Shown here one piece after another: positions 25,480 to 54,369 of a DNA stretch of 64,000 bases. Positions within the stretch are counted from its first letter, which is position 1; each line of letters starts with the position of its first letter. The notes under the pieces were generated by a model, which was given only the letters and a program-made list of their open reading frames with translations, was not told where the DNA came from and made no database searches. The stretch is from Malacoraja senta. Its lineage: Eukaryota. The stretch is taken from the NCBI GenBank assembly GCA_038087875.1, contig CM075981.1:19158001-19222000 (forward strand), given 5' to 3'. Both the position numbers and the translations under genes were made by a program.

Positions 25480-27085
25480 GGAGATATCTTCCAATATTTA
25501 AGAAGGGCAGCAGGGATAAGTTAATGAAACATGTCAGCGGCAGGGAAATTATTAAGAAATTTCTAAGGGATAGGAGTGATGAACGCTTTGAAAGGCAGGG
25601 ACTGATCAGTAATAGTCAGCATAGAACATGGAACAGTACTGCACAGGAAAGGGCCCTTCAGACGGCAATGTTTGTGCCAAACATGATGCCTAGTTAAAAT
25701 GCTCTCATCTGCCTGCACATGATATATTAGCATGGGTAGAGGATTGGCTAACAAATAGGAAGCAGAGAGTGGGGATAAATGGTTCATACTCGGGATGGCA
25801 ACCGGTAACTAGCGGGGTTCCGCAAGGGTCGGTGCTGGGACCCCAGTTGTTCACAATTTATATAAATGATTTGGAGGAGGGAACCAAGTGTAATATATCA
25901 AAATTTGCGGACGATACAAAAATGGGAGGAAAAGTAGGGGATGAGGAGGATAGGAAGAGTCTGCAAAAGGATATAGATAAGCTAGGTGAGTGGGCAACAA
26001 CTTGGCAGATGAAATTTAATACTAATAAATGTGAAGTCATTCACTTTGGGAAAAAAAATGATAGGGCAAGTTATTTTCTAAATGAGGTGGAGCTGCGTTG
26101 TAATGCAACGCAAAGGGATCTAGGGGTAGTAGTACATGAATCACTAAAAGTTAGTATGCAGGTGCAGCAAGCAATCAGGAAGGCCAATGGAGTTTTGGCC
26201 TTTATTGCTAGGGGGATTGAGTATAAAAACACGGAGGTCTTGCTGCAGCTGTACACAGTATTAGTGAGACCACATTTGGAATACTGTGTACAGTTCTGGG
26301 GTCCATACTTAAGAAAGGATGTACTGGCCCTGGAGGCAGTGCAGCGAAGGTTTACAAGATTAATTCCTGCAATGAGGGGATTGACATATGAGGAAAGGTT
26401 AAGTAGGCTGGAACTCTACTCTTTGGAGTTTAGAAGAATGAGAGGCGATCTCATTGAAACATATAAGATCGTGAGGGGCCTTGATCGGGTGGATGCACCG
26501 AGGATGTTCCCAATGATCGGGGAAACTAGAACTAGGGGACATAGTTGTAGAATAAGAGGGGGCTCTTTTAAAACTGAGATGAGGAAGAACTTCTTCACCC
26601 AGAGGGTGGTTAATTTATGGAATTCACTGCCCCAGGGAGCAGTGGAAGCAGAAACATTAAATATATTTAAGTCTAAAATAGATGGTTTTTTAGCTGCCAA
26701 GGGGATAAGGGGCTACGGGGAGAGGGCAGGGATATGGACCTAGGTATGGTTAGTATAGTAAGACCTGAGTGATCTCCTGGACAAGTGTCGATCGCCTGGA
26801 TTGGGGTCGGAGAGGAATTTCCCGGATTTTTTTCCCGAATTGGACCTGGGTTTTTATCCGGTTTTTTGCCTCCCCCAGGAGATCACGCGGTTCTTGGGGT
26901 GGAGAGGGGTGATAGCGATATAAAGGGGAGGGTAGTGTCTTGTGTTCTGTGTCTTGTGTCTACTGTTTGTGGGTAAGGGTGTCTGTTTAGTGTTCAGCCA
27001 TGAGCGAATGGCGGTGCGGGCTCGATGGGCCTGGTGGTCTACTCTCGCACCTACTTTCTATGTTTCTATGTTTCTATGATCCATA
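25480..27085 (+). mobile_element. CR1 LINE, relatively young (324-aa uninterrupted RT C-terminal ORF at 25769-26743)
   Basis: [28 protein letters not shown], open frame, 3' UTR and (tttctatg)n tail. Confidence 0.95.
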
Positions 27086-27789
27086 TCCCTCTACTCCCTG
27101 CACTTCCATGTGCCTATCCAAATACCTTCTAAATGGCACTGCTATATCTGCCTCTCCACCCCAGCAATGTGTTCCAGACCCCCACCACTCTGTGTAAAAA
27201 ACATGCCCCGCACATCTCTATTAAACATCCCCCCCTTTCACCTTATTGCCACATCCTGTAATGTTGTACATATCCTCCCTGGGGAAAATGGTGCTGAATG
27301 TCTATTCTCTTTCTGCCTCTCATAATTTTATATACTTCTTTCGAGTCTCCCCTTAACCTCTGACGTTCCAGAGAATATAATCCAATTGTATCCAACCTCA
27401 AAATGTCTCCACATCTTTCCTGCAATCAGGCGACCAGAATTGCATGCAATACTCCAAATGTGGCCCAACCAAAGTCCAATAGAGCAGCAGTATGACTTCC
27501 TGATCCTTATATTCAATGTCCATAGCAATGAAGACAAGCATACCATATGCCTTTTTTTCCACCCTATCTATGTGCAGCCGTCTCTAGTGAGTTTTGAACT
27601 TGACTCCAAGATCCCTCTACACATCAATCTGTTAAGGGTTTTGCCATTAACTATACTGTCTCCTTACATTCAACCTCTTGATGTGCAACACCTCATACTT
27701 GCTCGGGTTAGAGTTAATTTGCCATTTTTCCGCCCACTTCTGCAGCTGATCTATATCCTGCTGTATCTTCTGACAGCCTTCCTCACCAT

Positions 27790-30700
27790 ATGCATGATTT
27801 TGAACAAGATATTGACCCTGGAAATAATTTTCTTAACAATATAAACAATAACTGCTGTTATTACTCTGAAGATCAATTCAACATGAACATAAAATCAGAT
27901 CATGGAATGTCAATAATTCATTTCAATAGCAGATGTTTATATGGAAATTTTCACAACATCAAGGATTACTTAAGTCATCTAAACAAACCATTCAATGTGA
28001 TAGCCATATCTGAGACCTGGCTTAGTACTGAAAAGGGTGTGGATTTTGAGTTAAATGGATATGAACTGAGTTACATAAATAGGAAAAATAAAAAAGGAGG
28101 AGGGGTGGCTTTGTATGTAGATAAAAGATTAAATTATAAAATAGTGGAAAATATGACAACTAATATTGATGATGTGATGGAGATTATTACTGTAGAAATC
28201 TACCTGGAAAAAAAGAAAAATGTAATTGTAAGTTGTGTATACAGAGCACCTGGTTCCAATATTGAAATATTTAAGAATAGTATGGAAAGATTGTTTGCCA
28301 AGAAAGATCACAGAGTTGTGTTCATTTGTGGGGATTTTAATTTAGATCTCTTAAATCCCAACAAGCACAAACAGAATGATGAATTTATCGATGTATTGTT
28401 CAGTATGAGTTTTTTTCCACTTATCACCAAACCAAGTAGAATAACATCTCACTGTGCAACTCTAATAGACAACATATTTACAAACAGTATGGACAACAGC
28501 ATAAAGAGTGGGTTACTACTAAATGACATCAGTGACCATCTGCCGGTTTTTGTAATGTTTGTTTGTGATTATGTTAAGTGTAAGGATGTTAATAAGATTA
28601 GATACAGGAGAGTAAGAACAGAAGAATCTATAAATAAATTTAGTATTACTGACCCAAAATTGGAAACAGGTGTTTAAAGAGACTGATACCAACAAAGCGT
28701 ATGAAACATTCCTGATAATATTTAAATCATTATATGATGAACACTGTCCTTTGAAACAACACAACAAGAAGCAAAAATATATAGTTAGGCCATGGATGAC
28801 AAAAGGACTACAAAATGCATGCAAAATAAAGAATATCTTGTATAAAGAATTCATAAAATTCAGAACTATAGAAGCAGAAAGTAAATACAAAAGATATAAA
28901 AACAAATTGACTAGTATTATGAGGACATGTAAGAAAGATTATTATAATAAAATAATAAACGATAATAAAAATAATATCAAGGGTATATGGAATGTGTTAA
29001 ATAATATTATCAGGAATGGATCAATGAATATAAACTACCCTCAGTATTTTGAAGACAATGATACAACTGTAAGCGATATGAATGATGTGGTTAATGGGTT
29101 TAACACATTTTTTGTAAGTGTGGGACCAAAACTGGCAGAAGAAATCGATAATCCACAGTCAGAAGAAGGAGAGGGGAAGGTTGTGGATTTGTTAGACAGC
29201 AACCCAAACTCAATATTTTTCAAAGCAGCTGATGAAAAGGAGATTATTGACATTGTTAGTAATTGTAAGAATAAAAGGTCTACAGACAGGAATGACATTG
29301 ATATGGCTTTAATCAAGGTAGTCATTGGTGTATTTGTAAAACCCTTAACTTATATTTGCAATTTATCTTTCAAAACTGGTGTATTTCCATGTAAAATGAA
29401 AACTGCCAAAGTCATCCCACTATACAAAGCTGGAGACAGAAATGAATTTACAAATTACAGGCCGATGTCGTTACTCTCTCAGTTCTCAAAAATATTAGAA
29501 AAACTGTAGGTAAGCAGATTAGATAACTTTATCGAGAAGCACGAATTGCTAGTTGATAGTCAATATGGATTCAGGTCAAACAGATCGACATCCATGGCAT
29601 TAATGGAGTTAATTGAAGACATTACCAGTTCTATAGATAACAAGCAATATGCAGTGGGTGTATTTATAGATTTGAAAAAAGCATTCGATACAATTGATCA
29701 TCATTTGCTAAGAAAAAAACTGGAAAAGTATGGAATCAGAGGGGTTGTACTAGAGTGGATGAGAAGCTACATAAGTAAAAGACATCAGTTTGTGCAAATA
29801 GGGGACTGCAAATCAACATGCTTAGAAATAACTTGTGGATTCCCACAGGGGTCGGTTTTGGGCCCCAAATTATTTATTTTGTATATTAATGATATATGTA
29901 GGGTGTCAAACCTCTTGAAATTTGTGTTATTTGCAGATGACACTAATATTTTCTGTGATGGGGACAATTTGCAGCAGCTTTTGGAGGTGGTCACAGCTGA
30001 AATGAGTAAACTAAAAACATGGTTTGATTTGAATAAATTATCATTAAATTTAAACAAAACAAAACTTATGCTGTTTGGAAAACGCAAAATAAATACACAA
30101 GTAAAAGTAATGATAAATAATGTTGAAATAGAAAGAGTGTATGAAAATAAATTTCTGGGTCTGATTCTTGATCACAAAATCTGCTGGAAACCCCATATAA
30201 AACATGTGAGAGCAAAAGTAGCACAGAGTATTGGAGTGATGGGGAAAGCAAGGCATGTTTTGAATGAGAGAGCACTGTATATTCTGTACAGCTCACTTGT
30301 GTTACCGTATTTAAGTTACTGTGTGGAAGTATGGGGCAACACCTACAAAACCACCTTACAATCACTAAGCACACTACAAAAAAAGAGCTATTCATATAGT
30401 AAACAATGTAGGATATTATGAACACACCAATATACTGTATTTAAAATTAGACACCTTAAAGATTAAGGATCTGGTAGAATTTAAGACTGCACAAATAATT
30501 TATAAAGCAAAAAATAAACTGCTACCTGTAAACATACAAAAACTGTTCAGAGACAGAGAGGGGGGTTATAACTTTAGAGGGAAACTAAACTTGAAACAGC
30601 ATTATGCTCGGACCAATTTAAAAAGTATGTGTATTTCCATTTGTGGGGTGGTTTTGTGGAATGGTCTTGGCGAAACAATTAAACAAAGTATGAATATAAT

Positions 30701-31233
30701 GCAATTTAAAAAAATGTACAAAAGATATATCTTTGAAACGTACAGTAATGAGGAAGGAGAATGTAAATCTCACAGATGTTAATGGTGCTTGTTCTTTTTG
30801 TTCTTTTCTTTTTTTGTTCTTTTTTTCTTAATAGCTTGATTGGAGTAGTTTTATTTGAATTGTCTGTTTATTTTATTTTATTGAATTTTGCATTTGTTAA
30901 TGGTGAAGAATGGGGGTTGGACTTGACAAGCATAGGCTTCTTCCTATCCCTTTTTGAACGAGTCTAATGTGTATTATGTTGAAATTGGCTTTTGATTTTT
31001 TAATTTATGTNNNNNNNNNNNNNNNNNNNNNNNNNNNNNNNNNNNNNNNNNNNNNNNNNNNNNNNNNNNNNNNNNNNNNNNNNNNNNNNNNNNNNNNNNN
31101 NNNNNNNNNNNNNNNNNNNNNNNNNNNNNNNNNNNNNNNNNNNNNNNNNNNNNTCATTTTCATCTTTTCTTTTCTTCTTTTTTTAATCGTTCGAAATAAA
31201 AAGATATCAAATCAAATCAAATCAAATCAAATC
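27790..31233 (+). mobile_element. APE-RT LINE of the L2/Crack/Daphne type (ORF2 with stops and frameshifts), (CAAAT)n tail
   Basis: Endonuclease motifs HFNSR, AISETWL, GGGVALYV, CGDFN, TLIDNIF, SDHLP; RT motifs YRP.SLL, QYGFR, DLKKAFDT, PQGSVLGP, FADDT. Clade assignment is by eye. Confidence 0.85.
31011..31153. other. N run (143 nt); a homologous N run of 141 nt lies at 33690-33830
   Basis: Both runs have identical flanks (taatttatgt / tcattttcatc) in inverted orientation. Confidence 0.95.
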
Positions 31234-31295
31234 TCCAACTCCTCCAATTTTGGTGTCGTCAGCAAACTTACTCACCACTCATCTACATTTACATC

Positions 31296-33547
31296 TAGAG
31301 TAGACAAAATGTTTAAGAAGGAACTGCAGATGCTGCAAAATCAAAGGTAGACAAAAATGCTGGAGAAACTCAGCGAGTGAGGCAGCATCTATAGAGCGAA
31401 GGAAACGGCAATGTTTCGGGTCGAGACCCTTCTTCAGACTGATGTGAAACTGTACTTATCCTTGGACCAGGACCCCACAGAGGAGCACCAGGCCACTATC
31501 TCTAGCACTATCACTGACTTCATCACATCCGGCTCCCTGCCCTCCCAAGCTTCCAACCTCATCGTTCCGCAGCCCCGCACGGCCCGATTTTACCTTCTCC
31601 CCAAAATCCACAAACCTGACTGTCCTGGCAGACCCATTGTTTCTGCCTGTTCGTGTCCTACCGAACTCATTTCCACATACCTAGACTCCATCCTATCCCC
31701 CCTGGTTAAATCCCTCCCTACCTATGTTCAAGACACCTCACACGCTCTTTGTCTACTCCAGAACTTCCGTTTTCTAGGCACGCATTCCCTAATCTTCACC
31801 ATGGATGTCCAGTCACTCTACACCTCCATCCCCCACCAAGAGGGTCTTAAAGCCCTCCGTTTCTTCCTCGACTGCAGAACCAACCAATCCCCGTCCACTG
31901 ATACTCTCCTCCACCTACGTTAACAACTTTTTGTTTGACTCCTCCCATTTCCTCCAAATACAAGGAGTAGCTATGGGCACGCGCATGGGCCCTAGCTATG
32001 CCTGCCTCTTTGTAGGGTACGTCGAACAATCTTCGTTCGAGGCGTACCAGGGTCCTATCCCCAAACTCTACCTCCACTACATCGACGACTGCATTGGTGC
32101 TACCTCCTGCACCCACACACAACTCACTGACTTCATCCATTTCACCACTAACTTCCATCCGGCACTCAAATACACCTGGACCATTTCCGACATTTCCTTA
32201 TCATTTTTAGACCTCACTATCTCCATCACAAGTGATAGACTACTGACCGACATCCACTATAAACCCACCGACTCCCATGGGTATCTGGACTACTATTCTT
32301 CCCACCCTGCTTCTTGTAAGGACTCCATCCCCTACACCCAATTACTCTGGCTACGCCGCATCTGCACCCAGGATGAGGTGTTCCACACCAGGGCATCGGA
32401 GATGTCCTCATTCTTCAGGGAACGGGAGTTCCCCTCTTCTACTATAGATGAGGCTCTCACCAGGGTCTTTTCTATACCCTGTAACTCTGCTCTCACTCCC
32501 CATCCCCCCACTCGTAACAAGGGCAGAGTCCCCCTTGTCCTCACCTTCCACCCTACCAACCGTCACATACAACAAATAATCCTCCAACATTTTTGCCCCT
32601 CCAATGGGATCCCACCACCGGCCACATCTTCCCATCTCCTCTCATGTCTGCTTTCCACAGAGACCGCTCCCTCCGTAACTCCCTGGTCAATTTGTCCCTT
32701 CCCACCCAAACCACCCCCTCTCCTGGCACTCTTCCCTTGCAACCGCAGGAAATGCTACACTTGTCGCTTTACCTCCCCCCTTGACTCCATTCTAGGAACC
32801 AAGCAGTCTTTCCAGGTGCGGCAGAGGTTCACCTGCACCTCCTCCAACCTCATCTATTGCATCCGCTGCTCTAGGTGTCAGCTCCTCTACATCGGTGAGA
32901 CCAAGCGTAGGCTGGTGATTGTTTCGCCTAACATCTCCGCTCGGTTCGCATTATCCTACCTGATCTTCCGGTGGCCCAGCACTTAAACTCCCCCTCCCAT
33001 TCCGAATCTGACCTCTGTCCTGGGCCTCCTCCATGGCCAGAGTGAGGACCACTGTAAATTGGAGGAGCAGCACCTCATAACTTGGGCAGTTAACACCCCA
33101 GCGGTATGAACATTGACTTATCTAATTTCAGGTAGTCCTGGGGAGAGACAAGACTTTGCCTTCCATCACAGTGAGGAGGAGATTCACTGTGATGGATGTT
33201 TGTGTAAATTGTGTTGGTGTGTGTCTTGGTTCTCTTCTTGTTGTATGACTGCAGAAACCAAATTTTGTTTGAACTTCATTTGAGATCAAATGACAATAAA
33301 CAGTATTGTAATTGTAATTTCTCCTCCCCTTCTCACCTCTCCCTCAGCCCACTGTCTCTGCCTCTTCCTTTCTTCTTCCTGCCCCCCCCCACCCTCACAT
33401 CAGTCTGAAGAAGGGTCTCGACCCGAAACGTTGCCTATTTCCTTCGCTCCATAGATGCTGCCTCACCCGCTGAGTTTCTCCAGCATTTTTGTCTACCTTT
33501 GATTTTGCAGCATCTGCAGTTCCTTCTTAAACATTTTGTCTACTCTA
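31296..33547 (+). mobile_element. Penelope-like element A (RT plus GIY-YIG, frameshifted) with an inverted 3' terminus at its 5' end
   Basis: FYLLPKIHK, PGRPIVS, DVQSLYTSIP, GVAMG, YIDD, NLIYCIRC...YIGETKR; 31296-31447 is the reverse complement of 33396-33547. Confidence 0.93.
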
Positions 33548-34545
33548 GATGTAAATGTAGATGAGTGGTGAGTAAGTTTGCTGACGACACCAAAATTGGA
33601 GGAGTTGGAGATTTGATTTGATTTGATTTGATTTGATATCTTTTTATTTCGAACGATTAAAAAAAGAAGAAAAGAAAAGATGAAAATGANNNNNNNNNNN
33701 NNNNNNNNNNNNNNNNNNNNNNNNNNNNNNNNNNNNNNNNNNNNNNNNNNNNNNNNNNNNNNNNNNNNNNNNNNNNNNNNNNNNNNNNNNNNNNNNNNNN
33801 NNNNNNNNNNNNNNNNNNNNNNNNNNNNNNACATAAATTAAAAAATCAAAAGCCAATTTCAACATAATACACATTAGACTCGTTCGAAAAGGGATAGGAA
33901 GAAGCCTATGCTTGTCAAGTCCAACCCCCATTCTTCACCATTAACAAATGCAAAATTCAATAAAATAAAATAAACAGACAATTCAAATAAAACTACTCCA
34001 ATCAAGCTATTAAAAAAAAAAGAACAAAAAAAGAAAAGAACAAAAAGAACAAGCACCATTAACATCTGTGAGATTTACATTCTCCTTCCTCATTACTGTA
34101 CTTTTCAAAGATATATCTTTTGTACATTTTTTTAAATTGCATTATATTCATACTTTGTTTAATTGTTTCGCCAAGACCATTCCACAAAACCACCCCACAA
34201 ATGGAAATACACATACTTTTTAAATTGGTCCGAGCATAATGCTGTTTCAAGTTTAGTTTCCCTCTAAAGTTATAACCCCCCTCTCTGTCTCTGAACAGTT
34301 TTTGTATGTTTACAGGTAGCAGTTTATTTTTTGCTTTATAAATTATTTGTGCAGTCTTAAATTCTACCAGATCCTTAATCTTTAAGGTGTGTAATTTTAA
34401 GTACAGTATATTGGTGTGTTCATAATATCCTACATTGTTTACTATACGAATAACTCTTTTTTGTAGTGTGCTTAGTGATTGTAAGGTGGTTTTGTAGGTG
34501 TTGCCCCATACTTCCACACAGTAATTTAAATACGGTAACACAAGT
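33548..34545 (-). repeat. Inverted copy of 30295-31295 (host flank of PLE A)
   Basis: Reverse complement with only a few substitutions and indels, including the LINE 3' end, the N run, the (CAAAT)n tail and the CR1 stub. Confidence 0.95.
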
Positions 34546-35087
34546 AATTTATATGTATCATAAACAACAGAAGTCGCAGAACTGATATCTGCGGACTTCC
34601 ACTGGTCATGGACTTCCAGCCGGAATATCCACCTTCAACCACAACCATCTGTTTTCTATGAATAAGGCAGTTCTGAATCCATACGACCAAGTCATCACGA
34701 ATTCCATATATCTTAATCTTCTGGATCAGCCTACCAGCTGCAAAGTACATTTGGAACCTCACCAATATCCTCGACTTCAAATAGAGATTCCCCCCAGTAC
34801 CTATTGTCACCCTCTTTTTTAACATACATATATAAAGCCTTGAGATTTTCCTCAATCCATCTCGCCAATAACATTTCATGGCCCCATGGCTTTTCTAATC
34901 ACTCGTTTGAGTTCTTTCCTACTCGTTTTATATTCCTCATAAGCCCTGACTGATTCCACCTTCTTAAACTTGACATATGCTTCCTTTTTCTGACTGACCA
35001 AGTTTACAAGCTCCTTGGTCATCCATGGTTCCCTTACCTTGCCATCCTTATCTGTCCTCCTCCCTGGAGCAAGCCAATCCTGTACTT

Positions 35088-36997
35088 ACCCCTGGACCAT
35101 GACCCCACTGACGAGCACCAGGCCACCATCTCCAGCACCATCACCGACTTCATCCACTCCCACGCCCTGCCCGACCGAGCCTCCAACCTCATCGTTCCCC
35201 AGCCCCGCACAGCCCGCTTTTACCTTCTCCCCAAAATCCACAAACCTGACTGTCCCGGTAGACCCATTGTCTCTGCCTGTTCGTGCCCCACAGAACTCCT
35301 CTCCACCTACCTCGACTCCATCCTATCCCCCTTGGTTAAATCCCTCCCTACCTATGTTCAAGACACCTCAGACACTCTCCGTCGTCTCCGCGCATTCCAC
35401 TCTCTAGGCCCTCACCCCCTCATCTTCACCATGGACGTCCAGTCATTGTACACCTCCATCCCCGACCAGGATGGTCTCGAAGCCCTCCGTTTATTCCTCA
35501 ACCGTAGAAGCAACCTATACCCGGATACTGACACCCTCCTCCGCCTAGCGGAGCTGGTCCTTACACTTAATAACTTTTCATTTGACTCCTCCCATTTCCT
35601 CCAAATACAAGGCGTAGCTATGGGCAGACGCATGGGCCCCAGCTACGCCTGCCTCTTTGTCGGGTACGTAGAACAATCCTTGTTCAATGCGTACCAGGGC
35701 CCCATCCCCGACCTCTACCTCCGCTACATCGATGATTGTTTTGGTGCCACATCCTGCACCCACACACAACTGACTGACTTCATCCGCTTCACCACCAACT
35801 TCCATCCGGCACTCAAATACACCTGGACCATTTCCGACACTTCCCTACCATTCCTTGACCTCACTATCTCCATCGAAGGTGATAGACTCCTTACCGACAT
35901 CCACTACAAACCCACCGACTCCCATGGCTATCTGGACTACACTTCTTCCCACCCTGCTTCCTGTAAGGACTCCATCCCCCACTCCCAATTCCTCTGTCTA
36001 CGCCGCATCTGCTCCCAGGATGAGGCGTTCCACACCAGGGCATCTGATATGTCCTCATTCTTCAGGGAACGGGGGTTCTCCTCCTCCACCATAGATGAGG
36101 CTCGCACCAGGGTCTCTGCCATACCCCGCAACACTGCTCTCTCTCCCCATCCCCCCACTCACAACAAGGGCAGAGTCCCCCTAGTCCTCACCTTTCACCC
36201 CACCAGCCGTCACATACAACAAGTGATCCTCCGTCAGTTTCGCCACCTCCAACGTGACCCCACCACTCGCCACATATTCCCATCTCCCCCCATGTCTGCC
36301 TTCCGTAAAGACCGCTCCCTCCGTAACTCCCTTGTCAATTCTTCCATTCCCTCCCATACCACCCCCTCCCCTGGTACTTTCCCTTGCAACCGCAAGAGAT
36401 GCAACACTTGTCCCTTCACCTCCCCCCTCGACTCCATTCAAGGACCCAAGCAGTCGTTTCAGGTGCGACAGAGGTTCACCTGCATCTCCTCCAACCTCAT
36501 CTATTGCATCCGCTGCTCTAGATGCCAGCTGATCTACATCGGTGAGACCAAGCGGAGGCTTGGCGATCGTTTCGCCGAACACCTCCGGTCGGTCCGCAAT
36601 AACCAACCTGACCTCCCAGTGGCTCAGCACTTCAACTCCCCCTCCCATTCCGTATCTGACCTCTCTGTCCTGGGTCTCCTCCATGGCCACAGCGAGCAAC
36701 ACCGTAAATTGGAGGAAATGCACCTCATATTCCGCTTGGGCAGTCTACATCCTGGGGGCTTGAACATTGAATTCTCCCAATTCTGCTAGCCCTTGCTGTC
36801 CCCTCCCCTTCATCAGCCCTCTGGTTGTCTCCTCCCATCCCCCAGCCCTCGGGCTCCTCCTCCGCCTTTTTCCTTTTTTCCTTTCTTCTCCCCACCCCCT
36901 ATCAGTCTGAAGAAGGGTTTCGGCCCGAAACGTTGCCTATTTCCTTTGCTCCATAGATGCTGTTGCACCCACTGAGTTTCTCCAGCATTTTTGTGTA
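35088..36997 (+). mobile_element. Penelope-like element B, 5'-truncated, with an open RT-GIY-YIG frame from about 35085 to 36789
   Basis: No stop codons from YLPLDHDP to EFSQFC*; RT YIDD and GIY-YIG LIYCIRC/YIGETKR; 9-bp TSD CCTGTACTT (35079-35087 and 36998-37006). Confidence 0.95.
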
Positions 36998-37369
36998 CCT
37001 GTACTTTGATCAGTTGGGCTTTAAAGAACTCCCACATGTAATCTGTGTATTTACCCAATAAAAACTGCTCCCTATCTACCCTGCCTAATGGCATTGTAAT
37101 CTGCCTTTTCGACAATTATGTATCTTCCCCCAACATCCACACCTGTCCCTATTCAAAACAATCTGAAAACTTATGGAGTTGTGACTACTATCTCCAAATT
37201 TGTGTGCCACCGAAACACCAGCCACCTGGCCAGGTTCATTTCCCAATGCAAGGTCCATTATGGTCCCTCCTTGAGTCGGACTATCCACATACTGTTTAAG
37301 GAAACCTTCTTGGATTCACCTGAAACATTCTGCTCCATTTAATCATCTTACCCTGTGTAGCAGTTAGAT

Positions 37370-38810
37370 TCAATATTCAAGATTCAAGAGGTTTATTGCT
37401 ACGCCAGTTCCATACATGGTACATTCCTGTGTGAAAATTTTGTGCTGGAGGATTCCGTACAGTAAATTTAACATTAAATTATAAAGTGCAAGCATTCAAT
37501 TATAGACCAGTTCCAGAGTCCAGTTCAGGTGAGTTTCAGGGCTGGTTGTTTCAGCAGCCTGATTGCCTGGGGGAAAAGCTGTTTGAGTGTCTGGTGGTAC
37601 GGGGGCTGATGCTCCGGTACCTTCTGCCTGAGGGCAACAGGCAGAATAGACGATGGTCCGGGTAGCTGGGGTCTTTGATGATCCCCTGGGCATTTCAACC
37701 GCCTGGAGTAGATGTCCTGGAGGGAGGGCAGCTCGCACCCGGTGATGTGCTGGGCCGTCCGCACAACTCTCTGCACGGCTCTTCGGGCATGGCTGGTGCA
37801 GCTACCATGCCAGGTGGAAATACAGCCTGTCAGGATCCTCTCCACGGTGCCTCTGTAGAGATCCCTGAGCACCCGGGAGTTCAGGCGGAATTTCTTCAGT
37901 CGCCTGAGGTTTTATAGGTGCGGTTACACCTTTTTGCTGATGGTGGATATATGGGTGGTCCAGGGCAGGCCCTCTGTGATGTGGAGACCGAGGAACTTGA
38001 CGTTCTCCACCCTCTCCACCGCTACACCGTTGATGTTGATGGGGAGGGGGGCGGGTAGTGCGCCCCCCTCCCCCTCACTTCTTCCTGTAGTCGATGATCA
38101 CCTCCTTGGTCTTGTCGACGTTGAGAGAGAGGTTGTTGGCCCGGCATCACTGTGTCAGGGCCACTACACCTTCTCTGTAGGCCGACTCGTCGCCGTTGGT
38201 GATCAGACCCATGACTGTAGTGTTGTCCGCGAACTTGACGATGATGTTGGTGTCATGTTGGGCCACACAGTCGTGGGTGTACAGGGAGTACAGGAGGGGG
38301 CTGAGGACACACGCCTGAGGTGCGCCGATGTTGAGGGTGAGGGCTGTGGAGGTGTGGTCTCCGATCCTCACCACCTGGGGTCGGCCCGTCAGGAAATCCA
38401 GGATCCAGGTGCACAGGCCTGGGTTCAGTCCCAGGTCCAGGAGCTTACCGACGAGTCCATGAACAGCATCCTAAAAAATAAGTGTCCCTCTTGTCCAGGT
38501 GAGTGAGGGCGGTGTGAAGGATGTGGGCGATGGCGTAGTCTGTTGGGGCTGTAGGCAAATTGGCAGGGGTCCAGGTTGTTGGGTAGTGAGAAGCAGATTA
38601 TGTCCTTGACTAACTTCTCAAAGCATTTGCTGCTGATGGGTGTCAATGCCATCGGTCTCCAGTCGTCGAGGGTGGTGGATTTGTTGTGCTTGGGTATGGG
38701 GATGATGGTGGAGGTTTTCAGACAGGTGGGGACGGATCTTAGGGAAAGCGAGAGGTTGAAAATGTCAATGAACACCCCCGCTAGCTGACTTGCACATGCC
38801 TTCAGGACGC
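37370..38810 (-). mobile_element. Rex1/Babar-like LINE, 5'-truncated
   Basis: [66 protein letters not shown]; (ttgaatc)n tail at about 37370. Confidence 0.88.
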
Positions 38811-51795: not shown

Positions 51796-52435
51796 TGTAT
51801 CAGATCACTCCTCAACCTCTGACATTTCAGAGAAAACAATTCAAGTTTGTTCAACCTCTCCTTATTGCTAATACCACCTAATCCAGGCATCATTCTGGCA
51901 AAACTCTTCTGCACCATTTCCAAGCCACCACATCTTTCTTGTAATGGGGCGACCAGAACTGCATACTCCAGATGCAACCTCACCAAAGTCGTATAAAGCT
52001 GCGACATGACTTCCTTGTTGCAGACAAAGTCAGGCCGACTCTCCCTAAATAACCAATTCCCTTCCATGGGATAAATCCAATCCTGAAATATCTTCTCCAA
52101 TAGATTCCTCACCACTGATATGAGGCTCAGCAACCTATAATTCCCTGGACTGTCTCTATCTCCCTCCTTAGACTAAGGAACAACATTGGCTACTGTCCAG
52201 TCCTCCGTGGATAGAGAGGTTGCAAAAAGCTTGGTCAAAGTCTATTCAATCTTCTCTATTGCTTTTTAAAAAATAACATAGGATAGCCATGGGAATTTAA
52301 CCATCTTACTCCTCTTCGAGAGTCTTAACACCACCTCCTTCTTGGCTCAAACTGCCCTTATATGTTAGTATTCTCCACACTATCCTCACTGTGCTCCGTA
52401 TTCTTATTGTTTATGAATACATAGGCAAAGTACTT

Positions 52436-54083
52436 GAAGGAAGACAAAAATGCTGGAGAAACTCGGCGGGTGAGGCAGCATCTATGAAGAGAAGGAATAG
52501 GCAACATTTTGGGTCGAGACCCTTCTTCAGACTGATGTCGGGGGAGGGGGAGGGGGGGGGGCAGGGAAAAGGAAACTGGGGCTGCATCTGCACCCAGAAT
52601 GAAGTGTTCAAGACCAGGGCATCGGAGATGTCCCCATTCTTTTGGGAACAGGGGTTCCCCTCTGCTATTATAGATGAGGCTCTCACCAGGATCTCCTCTA
52701 TATCCTGCAGCTCTGCTCTCACTCCCCATCCCCCTACTCATAACAAGGACAGAGTCCCCCTTGTCCTCACCTTCCACCCGACTAGCTGTCGTATACAACA
52801 TATAATCTCCCTGGTCTGGAACACCACATTCTGGGTGCAGATGCGGCATAGACGGAGGAATTGGGAGTCAAATTGGGAGTCGAGGATAGAGTCCTTACAG
52901 GAAGCAGGGTGGGAAGAAGTGTCATCCAGAGAGCCATGTGAGTCAGTGGGTTTGTAGTCCAGATAGCCGTGGAAATCAATGGGTTTCTACTACAAACCCA
53001 CCGACTCCCATGGTTCTCTGGACTACACTTCTTCCCACCCTGCTTCCTGTAAGAACTCTATCCCCTACTCCCAATTCCTCCATCTACGCCGCATCTGCAT
53101 CCAGAATGAGATGTTCCAGACCAGGGCATCAGAGATGTCCTCATTCTTTAGGGAACGGGGGTTCCCCTCTGACTATAGATGAGGCTCTCACCAGGGTCTC
53201 CTCTATATTCCGCTCTCACTCCACATCCCCTACTCATAACAAGGACAGAGTCTCCCTTGTCCTCACCTTCCACCCTACCATCCGTCGCATACAACATATA
53301 ATCTTCCGACATTTTTGCCACCTCCAACGGGATCCCACCACTGGCCACATCTTGTCATCTCCTTCCTTTTCTGCTTTCCGCAGAGACCGTTCCCTCCGTA
53401 ACTCCCTGGTCAATTTGTCCCTTCCCACCCAAACCATCTCCTCCCCTGATACTTTCCCTTGCAACCGCAGGAAATACTACACTTGTCGCTTTACCTCCCT
53501 CTTCAACTCCATCCTAGGGCCCAAACAGTCTTTCCAGATGAGGCAGAGGTTCACCTGCACCTCCTCTAACCTCATCTACTGCATCCGCTGTTCCAGGTGT
53601 CAACTTCTCTACATTGGTGAGACCAAGCGCAGGCTTGGCAATTGCTTCGCCCAACATCTCCGCTCAGTTCGCAATAACCAACCTGATCTCCTGGTTGCTC
53701 AGCACTTCAACTCCCCCTCCCGTTCCGAATCTGACCTTTCTGTCTTGGGCCTCCGCCATTGCCAGAGTGAGGCCCAGCGCAAATTGGTGGAACAGCACCT
53801 CATATTTTGCTTGTGTAGTTTACACGCCAGCGGTATGAAAATTGACCTCCAATTTCAGGTAGTCCTTGCTTTGTCCCTCCTTCTCCCCCTTCCCAACTCT
53901 CCCCCAAGCCTACTGTCTCCGCCTCTTCCTTTCCTTTTCCCCGCACTCCCCGACATCAGTCTGAAGAAGGGTCTCAACCCGAAATGTTGCCTATTCCTTC
54001 TCTCCATAGATGCTGTCTCACCCGCTGAGTTTCTCCAGCATTTTTGACTACCTTCGATTATTCCAGCATCTGCAGTTCTTTCT
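52436..54083 (+). mobile_element. Penelope-like element C with an inverted terminus and an internal inverted segment, inserted in an old minus-strand CR1 (about 51800-54290)
   Basis: 14-bp TSD TAGGCAAAGTACTT (52422-52435 and 54084-54097); GIY-YIG motif LIYCIRC/YIGETKR. Confidence 0.9.
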
Positions 54084-54369
54084 TAGGCAAAGTACTTAGT
54101 TAGTACTTCACCTACATCCTCTGACTCCAAGAACACTTTTCCTTCTTTACCCTTGAGTGGTCCTACCTTCTTCCTGGTTACCTTGTTGATTTAATTTACA
54201 TATAAAAAGCATTACAATTTTCTTCAACTCAACTTACGTCAGTTCTAATCACCTACTTGAGTTCTTTCCTACTTGCTTTATATTCCTCAATATCAAGATT
54301 GAATGAAATAGTCAGGGTGAGAGATCAGTTAGTTGCGCGTGTTCTTCGTTTGCGCAGTGTTGCGATACG

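Follow-up and report, generated by a model that had tools for sequence, protein, structure and literature searches.

We examined a 64-kb window of the Malacoraja senta genome (assembly GCA_038087875.1, contig CM075981.1, 19,158,001-19,222,000 of the forward strand; all coordinates are window-based), in which a Penelope-like element (PLE) sits between two inverted copies of its host flank. The segments 30295-31447 and 33395-34545 align as reverse complements of each other, far beyond chance. Each arm consists of ~1 kb of sequence from a host long interspersed nuclear element (LINE) and a 152-nt PLE 3' unit, and the arms are separated by 1947 nt of unique sense PLE body, giving overall 1.15-kb arms and a 1.9-kb loop. 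The original prediction for this DNA had placed an inverted PLE 3' end at 31296-31447 and a sense body running to 33547, and the alignment bears out both. The features of the locus, and those of two further PLE copies in the window, are collected in Table 1.

Table 1. Positions of the inverted duplication, its host elements and related PLE copies (RT, reverse transcriptase; UTR, untranslated region; ORF, open reading frame; APE, apurinic/apyrimidinic endonuclease; TSD, target-site duplication)
Feature	Position	Strand	Description	Basis
LINE-A	27800-31235	+	APE-type LINE: endonuclease, RT, 3' UTR, (ATCAA)n tail; inserted in older LINE-B
Left arm (original)	30295-31447		Host flank 30295-31295 plus inverted PLE 3' unit	Arm alignment
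N run, left arm	31011-31153		143 nt; mirror image of 33690-33830
LINE-B piece left of target	31236-31295	-	60 nt, ..DVNVDEW	Translation
Inverted PLE 3' unit ("a")	31296-31447	-	152 nt; joined to flank via odd end TAGAGTAGACAAAATGTTT	Seven-unit alignment, motif search
Unique PLE body	31448-33394	+	5'-truncated; covers RT and GIY-YIG region, frameshifted
Sense PLE 3' unit ("a prime")	33395-33547	+	Continuous with body; odd 19-nt end AAACATTTTGTCTACTCTA
Duplicated flank (right arm, copy)	33548-34545		Reverse complement of 30295-31295: LINE-B piece, LINE-A tail, 3' UTR, ORF end
N run, right arm	33690-33830		141 nt; mirror image of 31011-31153
Microhomology	34541-34545		CAAGT (ACTTG on - strand), common to end of flank copy and first bases of right host flank
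LINE-B right of target	34541-35079	-	..GRLIQKIKIYGI..LLFMIHINYL	Translation, LINE alignment
PLE-2	35080-37007		Second PLE, inserted in LINE-B
PLE with ordinary insertion	52431-54090		13-bp TSD AGGCAAAGTACTT

The sense part of the focal PLE, body and 3' unit together (31448-33547), spans 2.1 kb and is truncated at residue ~235-255 of its ~800-aa relatives, as judged from an N-terminal alignment. Its body is 85% identical in DNA sequence over 1.7 kb to PLE-2 (35080-36793). Domains were assigned with Pfam on the ORFs of LINE-A, the focal PLE and PLE-2. No RVT_1 match was found on the focal PLE ORFs; a YIDD motif is visible in the translation, and the copy is frameshifted in the GIY-YIG region. 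The 485-aa ORF of PLE-2 (35332-36789) has 834 relatives, including shark and ray proteins, many of them with RVT_1, and in several the GIY-YIG domain (PF01541) follows RVT_1. On PLE-2 itself GIY-YIG scores E=5e-4 and 20.7 bits, under the Pfam cut-off of 22.6. Judged from these protein relationships, the focal element is a PLE with RT coding capacity and a putative GIY-YIG region like that of its relatives. An exact look-up of three ORFs in a protein collection, two crossing the a/P or the right outer joint and one starting at the right outer joint, found none of them present. At 32731 the focal PLE has one base that is absent from most family contigs, apparently a private 1-nt frameshifting insertion.

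The PLE 3' ends were compared by alignment of seven PLE 3' units from the window, together with a motif search. Inverted units occur at 31296-31447 and 52431-52574, and the seven copies fall into two 3'-end classes ~30 nt apart. A core-like motif, CTGAAGA..GAAAC, is conserved in all 7 units. The Rfam hammerhead models gave no match to these units even at E<=10, and helix I could not be paired by hand; the motif is described here as hammerhead-like only.

The host of the insertion is also a composite. LINE-A gives Pfam matches to Exo_endo_phos and RVT_1, and the left arm consists mostly of the terminal ~940 nt of this element (30295-31235); the LINE-A ORF at 29546-30421 passes position 30295 unbroken. 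The coding sequence of LINE-B is readable on the - strand at 26900-27800, 31236-31295, 34541-35079 and from 37008 onward. The two LINE-B pieces that flank the insert were joined by script, translated and aligned to the other LINE RT copies in the window. The rejoined frame reads ...LLFMIHINYL|DVNVDEW.. across the insertion point, where the uninterrupted LINE-B would read ...AAATTACTTG|GATGTAAATG..., and three other LINE copies in the window align gap-free across INYL|DVNV (e.g., INDLDDGVENW at 45694-45440). A 3245-bp insert (31296-34540) hence lies at one point of LINE-B, with the frame kept, exact to within a codon. Neither a TSD nor a target deletion was found for the insert by LINE-B joining and LINE alignment. 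The proposal that a host LINE is split by the insert is borne out by this translation and by the alignment to the other LINE copies.

The arms differ at 12 of the 1009 non-N alignment columns (~1.2% divergence). They also differ in length by 1-nt indels at 30378, where a run of A7 faces one of A6, and at 31406/33437, and by 2 nt inside the N runs. A G/A difference at 30315 changes LPYLSY to LPYLNY between the arms. The codon difference and the A7/A6 indel are those from which the arms had been predicted to be non-identical inverted copies, and both are present in the arm alignment. The letters flanking both N runs align in register in both arms, with a net offset of 2 nt; the runs therefore cover equal content, and their mirrored placement resembles content-based masking more than two separate gaps in the assembly. 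They fall in the 3' UTR of LINE-A, whose ORF ends at 30782, and affect no reading frame. Of the two arms, the left is the original and the right the copy, because the left one runs on into LINE-A upstream and its LINE-B piece is oriented as LINE-B at 34541 and beyond, whereas the right arm stops abruptly at 34545. The converse assignment was rejected, as continuity with upstream LINE-A and collinearity with LINE-B are both confined to the left arm.

Contigs from public sequencing runs were placed on the window with a bridging threshold of 31 nt. This gave mostly short, high-copy contigs, and the right outer joint was the only one covered. A 166-nt contig (public run X15, depth 16.5) lies on 34518-34650, across that joint, with 0 differences. 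This contig provides read-level, non-independent support, and X15 may be the source sample. Depth was ~39 in the bin 31094-31242, at the outer end of the left arm, and 16.5 in the joint contig, which is consistent with two arm copies; the depths are not comparable and were not used. Relative to family contigs, each arm carries at least one private change, at 30315 on the left and at 34453 on the right. A chimeric or fold-back read, or a repeat misjoin, could in principle have produced a palindrome that is absent from the animal. Tandem and inverted PLE structures do trouble assemblies (PMC8557442), no public run contained more than half of the sequence words of the stretch, and no placed contig spans the whole structure. 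However, such an artefact would have to yield arms that differ at 12 sites plus 3 indels, each with a private change, around a 1.9-kb unique centre that is not a read-end hairpin. It would also have to set the outer joint at a microhomology exactly where the host LINE continues, in agreement with the X15 contig. An assembly artefact is unlikely, and we consider this explanation highly improbable.

A distinctive feature of the structure is the sequence at the two PLE/flank joints. At both, the ...TTCTT end is followed by an identical odd stretch of 19 nt, AAACATTTTGTCTACTCTA, and the only other PLE copy in the window that reaches that far (53961 onward) is without it. The extra 19 nt look as though the upstream start site (CATTTTTGTCTACC) had been copied for a short distance before a jump. 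Because such an accident is unlikely to happen twice, the common end suggests that one joint is a DNA-templated copy of the other and that both arms derive from one event. Two independent primings, one for each joint, are disfavoured, since the end left by an abortive start and jump is common to both. We also considered the right arm as an independent LINE copy, an option that had been named in advance as one that would overturn the proposal. It is ruled out by the two nested junctions and the odd PLE end that the arms have in common and by the absence of any second LINE-A copy in a search of the window, the duplicated flank apart.

The right arm closes on the right host flank at five bases, ACTTG, which occur at 30295-30299 as the reverse complement of 34541-34545 and stand at the very end of the right flank. 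Closure at this 5-bp microhomology, as originally predicted, is borne out, and it falls exactly at the target. Use of the first available ACTTG was rejected as an explanation of the joint: the same motif occurs at 30921 and 30589, nearer the break. Free DNA ends exposed during integration would be expected to rejoin in just this way, exactly, TSD-less and at a terminal microhomology. For this reason we favour, with confidence that goes about halfway, an origin of the inverted duplication during PLE integration, as its by-product. Three features common to both arms also speak for this reading: the joint of LINE-A with LINE-B, the joint of LINE-B with the PLE, and the odd 19-nt end. In the proposed sequence of steps, the PLE endonuclease would nick the top strand at 31295, and the resulting 3'-OH would prime complementary DNA (cDNA) synthesis on the PLE RNA. 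An abortive start followed by a jump of the enzyme would leave the odd 19-nt end. The strand made of left flank and cDNA would then itself become a template. Second-strand synthesis on it, snap-back or otherwise primed, would overrun the cDNA/target joint and continue ~1 kb into the flank; replication of an unrepaired end is an alternative for this step. Across the break, the opposite 3' end (...ACTTG) would pair with that of the new strand (...CAAGT), and microhomology-mediated end joining would seal the joint. One more step would be needed for the asymmetry between the 152-nt and 2.1-kb PLE parts: an inner loss in a larger palindrome arm, unequal trimming or a second template switch. The resulting inverted repeat would later have diverged by ~1.2%. 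Some of these steps have precedents: in vitro, the protein of an Anolis PLE cuts both strands of the target and extends them (PMC11167929), and self-priming has been proposed from palindromes at inverted PLE joints (PMC3846280).

The same closure admits another explanation, in which reverse transcription of a read-through PLE RNA, extended by ~1 kb of 3'-transduced flank, started at the bottom-strand ...ACTTG through 5-nt pairing, while the homologous left flank primed the inverted unit, as in twin priming. Target-primed reverse transcription typically shows microhomology at the extreme 3' end of the primer strand, and the end of the left flank and the beginning of the flank copy are complementary throughout. 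The source of such an RNA, however, must have been a PLE in the opposite orientation at this very site or a near-identical paralogous locus, and the window holds no trace of either. In the former case, the older PLE copy must also have been replaced to the base. The source locus would show a PLE 3' end joined to GATGTAAATGTAG... and then LINE-A. We regard this route as very improbable, the least probable of the explanations considered.

The differences between the two PLE units bear on whether the duplication arose together with the insertion. The units differ by 4 mismatches and 1 indel, all within 31376-31412, a 37-nt stretch in the inner part of the left unit, and their outer 110 nt are identical. 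The clustered changes adjoin the hammerhead-like core, and relative to the other copies in the window all five are derived on the left unit. No strand-coordinated (deaminase-like) pattern was seen among them. A two-step history is mildly favoured by this distribution. In such a history, an ordinary PLE insertion (inverted 152-nt unit, body and sense unit) was followed by a later break or collapsed fork in or near the sense 3' unit, and the break was repaired by template switching, through synthesis-dependent strand annealing (SDSA) or microhomology-mediated break-induced replication (MMBIR). The 3' end of the sense unit would anneal to the inverted unit 1.9 kb upstream, copy its outer part and ~1 kb of the left flank and rejoin at ACTTG. 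One possible cause of the break is a renewed cut by the PLE endonuclease at the end of its own element; PLE proteins are known to cut at their own pseudo-long terminal repeat (pLTR) junctions (PMC11167929). Such a history explains why the five differences lie only in the inner part with the outer 110 nt identical, accounts for the odd end at both joints as a copy, and agrees with a divergence of the PLE units at least equal to that of the flanks. However, the copied strand rejoins precisely at the point where the host LINE resumes after 31295, in frame, TSD-less and with nothing lost, and nothing would direct a later switch to that point. The TSD expected of the first insertion must in addition have been absent or removed to the base. 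We consider two steps a serious rival, though less probable than an origin during integration.

Several observations weigh against an origin as an integration by-product. A plain fold-back predicts symmetric PLE arms, and 152 nt against 2.1 kb requires an extra, unobserved step. The PLE units carry 5 changes in 152 nt compared with 9 in 858 for the flanks (Fisher p 0.05-0.09), and the confinement of the five changes to 31376-31412 is not predicted by a one-step copy. The 52431-54090 insertion, of the same family, has a 13-bp TSD, whereas the focal insert has none, which points to an atypical second break. On the arm side the X15 contig extends only 28 nt, under the bridging threshold, and the evidence comes from one locus alone. 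The clustering of the five changes is fully explained by no model. Two features bear on whether duplication and insertion were the same event: the exact closure, which appears to favour one event, and the clustered inner-unit differences, which appear to favour two. The mechanism of the original prediction holds up in its anatomy, in the choice of the original arm, in a single event for both arms and in the closure at ACTTG. A fold-back of the primed cDNA itself would be a possible route only with a further step, since a simple fold-back would give a full palindrome. The case is a single, non-genic locus, a useful lead rather than a result, and the two-step history is a live rival.

Canonical insertions of endonuclease-positive (EN+) PLEs have pLTRs, an adjacent inverted 5'-truncated copy and an optional 30-40-bp "tail" (PMC8557442, PMC3846280, PMC11167929). 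The focal locus is like them in having an inverted 3'-end unit directly upstream of a 5'-truncated sense copy, and the PLE copies of the window show two alternative 3' ends ~30 nt apart. In the canonical cases, however, the inverted repeats are element-only and bounded by a TSD, whereas here they include ~1 kb of host DNA and one idiosyncratic end in both units, with no TSD. Insertions of PLEs without a TSD are on record (PMC3846280), so its absence is compatible with membership in this group. A full-text literature search found no relevant report of an inverted flank duplication for Penelope elements.

For LINE-1 (L1), insertions accompanied by an inverted duplication of their flank, or by a fold-back of it, have been described (bioRxiv 10.1101/2024.12.14.628481; PMC7058536). 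As in these L1 inverted duplications and L1-bridged fold-backs, a retroelement stands at the centre of a head-to-head flank duplication with a short closing microhomology, and both can be read as remodelling or replication of break ends from target-primed reverse transcription. By analogy, the focal locus would be the PLE counterpart of the published L1 inverted duplications. The predicted element endonuclease here is GIY-YIG, in contrast to APE in L1. The L1 cases are somatic or experimental and keep a TSD signature, and their fold-backs are chromosome-scale, whereas the duplication here is local (1 kb) and TSD-less, with arms diverged by ~1.2%. Since the arms are old enough to have diverged to this extent, the duplication presumably lies in a germline genome. 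The twin priming of L1 (5' inversion), reportedly described by Ostertag and Kazazian in 2001, is similar in that both target strands prime and an inverted segment lies next to a sense segment. It is also mentioned in 10.1101/2021.12.20.472354. Twin priming, in contrast to what is seen here, inverts a different part of the RNA and duplicates neither element nor flank. Inverted duplications also arise by inverted-repeat-mediated template switching (MMBIR, duplication-inverted triplication-duplication (DUP-TRP/INV-DUP) rearrangements) and as fold-backs induced by double-strand breaks in yeast. Such events are cited in bioRxiv 10.1101/2024.12.14.628481 and PMC11724301. There, too, copying of the opposite strand is primed from a short inverted homology, and a microhomology closes the product, but those events are unrelated to insertion and without restoration of the target to the base.

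How PLE integration is completed, and how the tandem and inverted ends originate, is an open question (PMC8557442, PMC11167929). Copying across the cDNA/target joint into host DNA, with closure to the base, would constrain the final integration step, because copying that crossed the joint implies that a flank-plus-cDNA strand at some point served as a DNA template. It would also mean that the L1-type outcome of an insertion with an inverted flank duplication is not limited to APE-LINEs or tumour cells, and that kilobase palindromes persist from such events in the germline genome of a vertebrate. A broader proposal is that PLE intermediates routinely template a second strand on target strand plus cDNA, with inverted units as the short form and host-flank mirrors as the run-on form, making PLEs a recurrent germline source of host palindromes in skates. 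We find this generalization doubtful. If it were true, host palindromes in skates could include hairpin-RNA loci and duplicated regulatory modules, and the focal locus would be a fossil intermediate that exposes the second-strand step of PLEs.

The 52431-54090 insertion offers a comparison within the same window. Its inverted unit ends at the inner start site, and its sense unit ends ~30 nt further out, corresponding to the published "tail". This architecture fits priming on both strands, as observed in vitro (PMC11167929). An internal snap-back palindrome (52809-52958 versus 52986-53126, with a 30-nt spacer) shows that fold-back synthesis occurs in the focal PLE family, which speaks for the integration reading. 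The arrangement implies several template switches in one insertion. The more general claim, that fold-back explains inverted pLTRs, is not supported: the inverted unit of this copy has a different outer end and the copy carries a 13-bp TSD, as expected from separate priming on both strands. The copy also contains an extra sense fragment at 52581-52807. In four public runs, hundreds of contigs connect a pair of PLE 3' units in head-to-head orientation (31439-31442 to 33400-33404); these represent abundant fold-back mini-insertions.

PLE-2 and the focal PLE (31448) begin at the same element position, CTGTACTTA, though they are only 85% identical. The Y codon at this shared start is conserved in the ~800-aa relatives, at residues ~234-256. 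The common start points to either a strong stop or a defined 5' end of the RNA. Eight nucleotides at the 5' joint of PLE-2, CTGTACTT, also match the host LINE at its insertion point; they may represent a TSD or a microhomology of 8 bp at that joint. With LINE-A, the focal PLE complex and PLE-2, the old LINE-B on the - strand took three nested insertions within ~10 kb (26900-37700).

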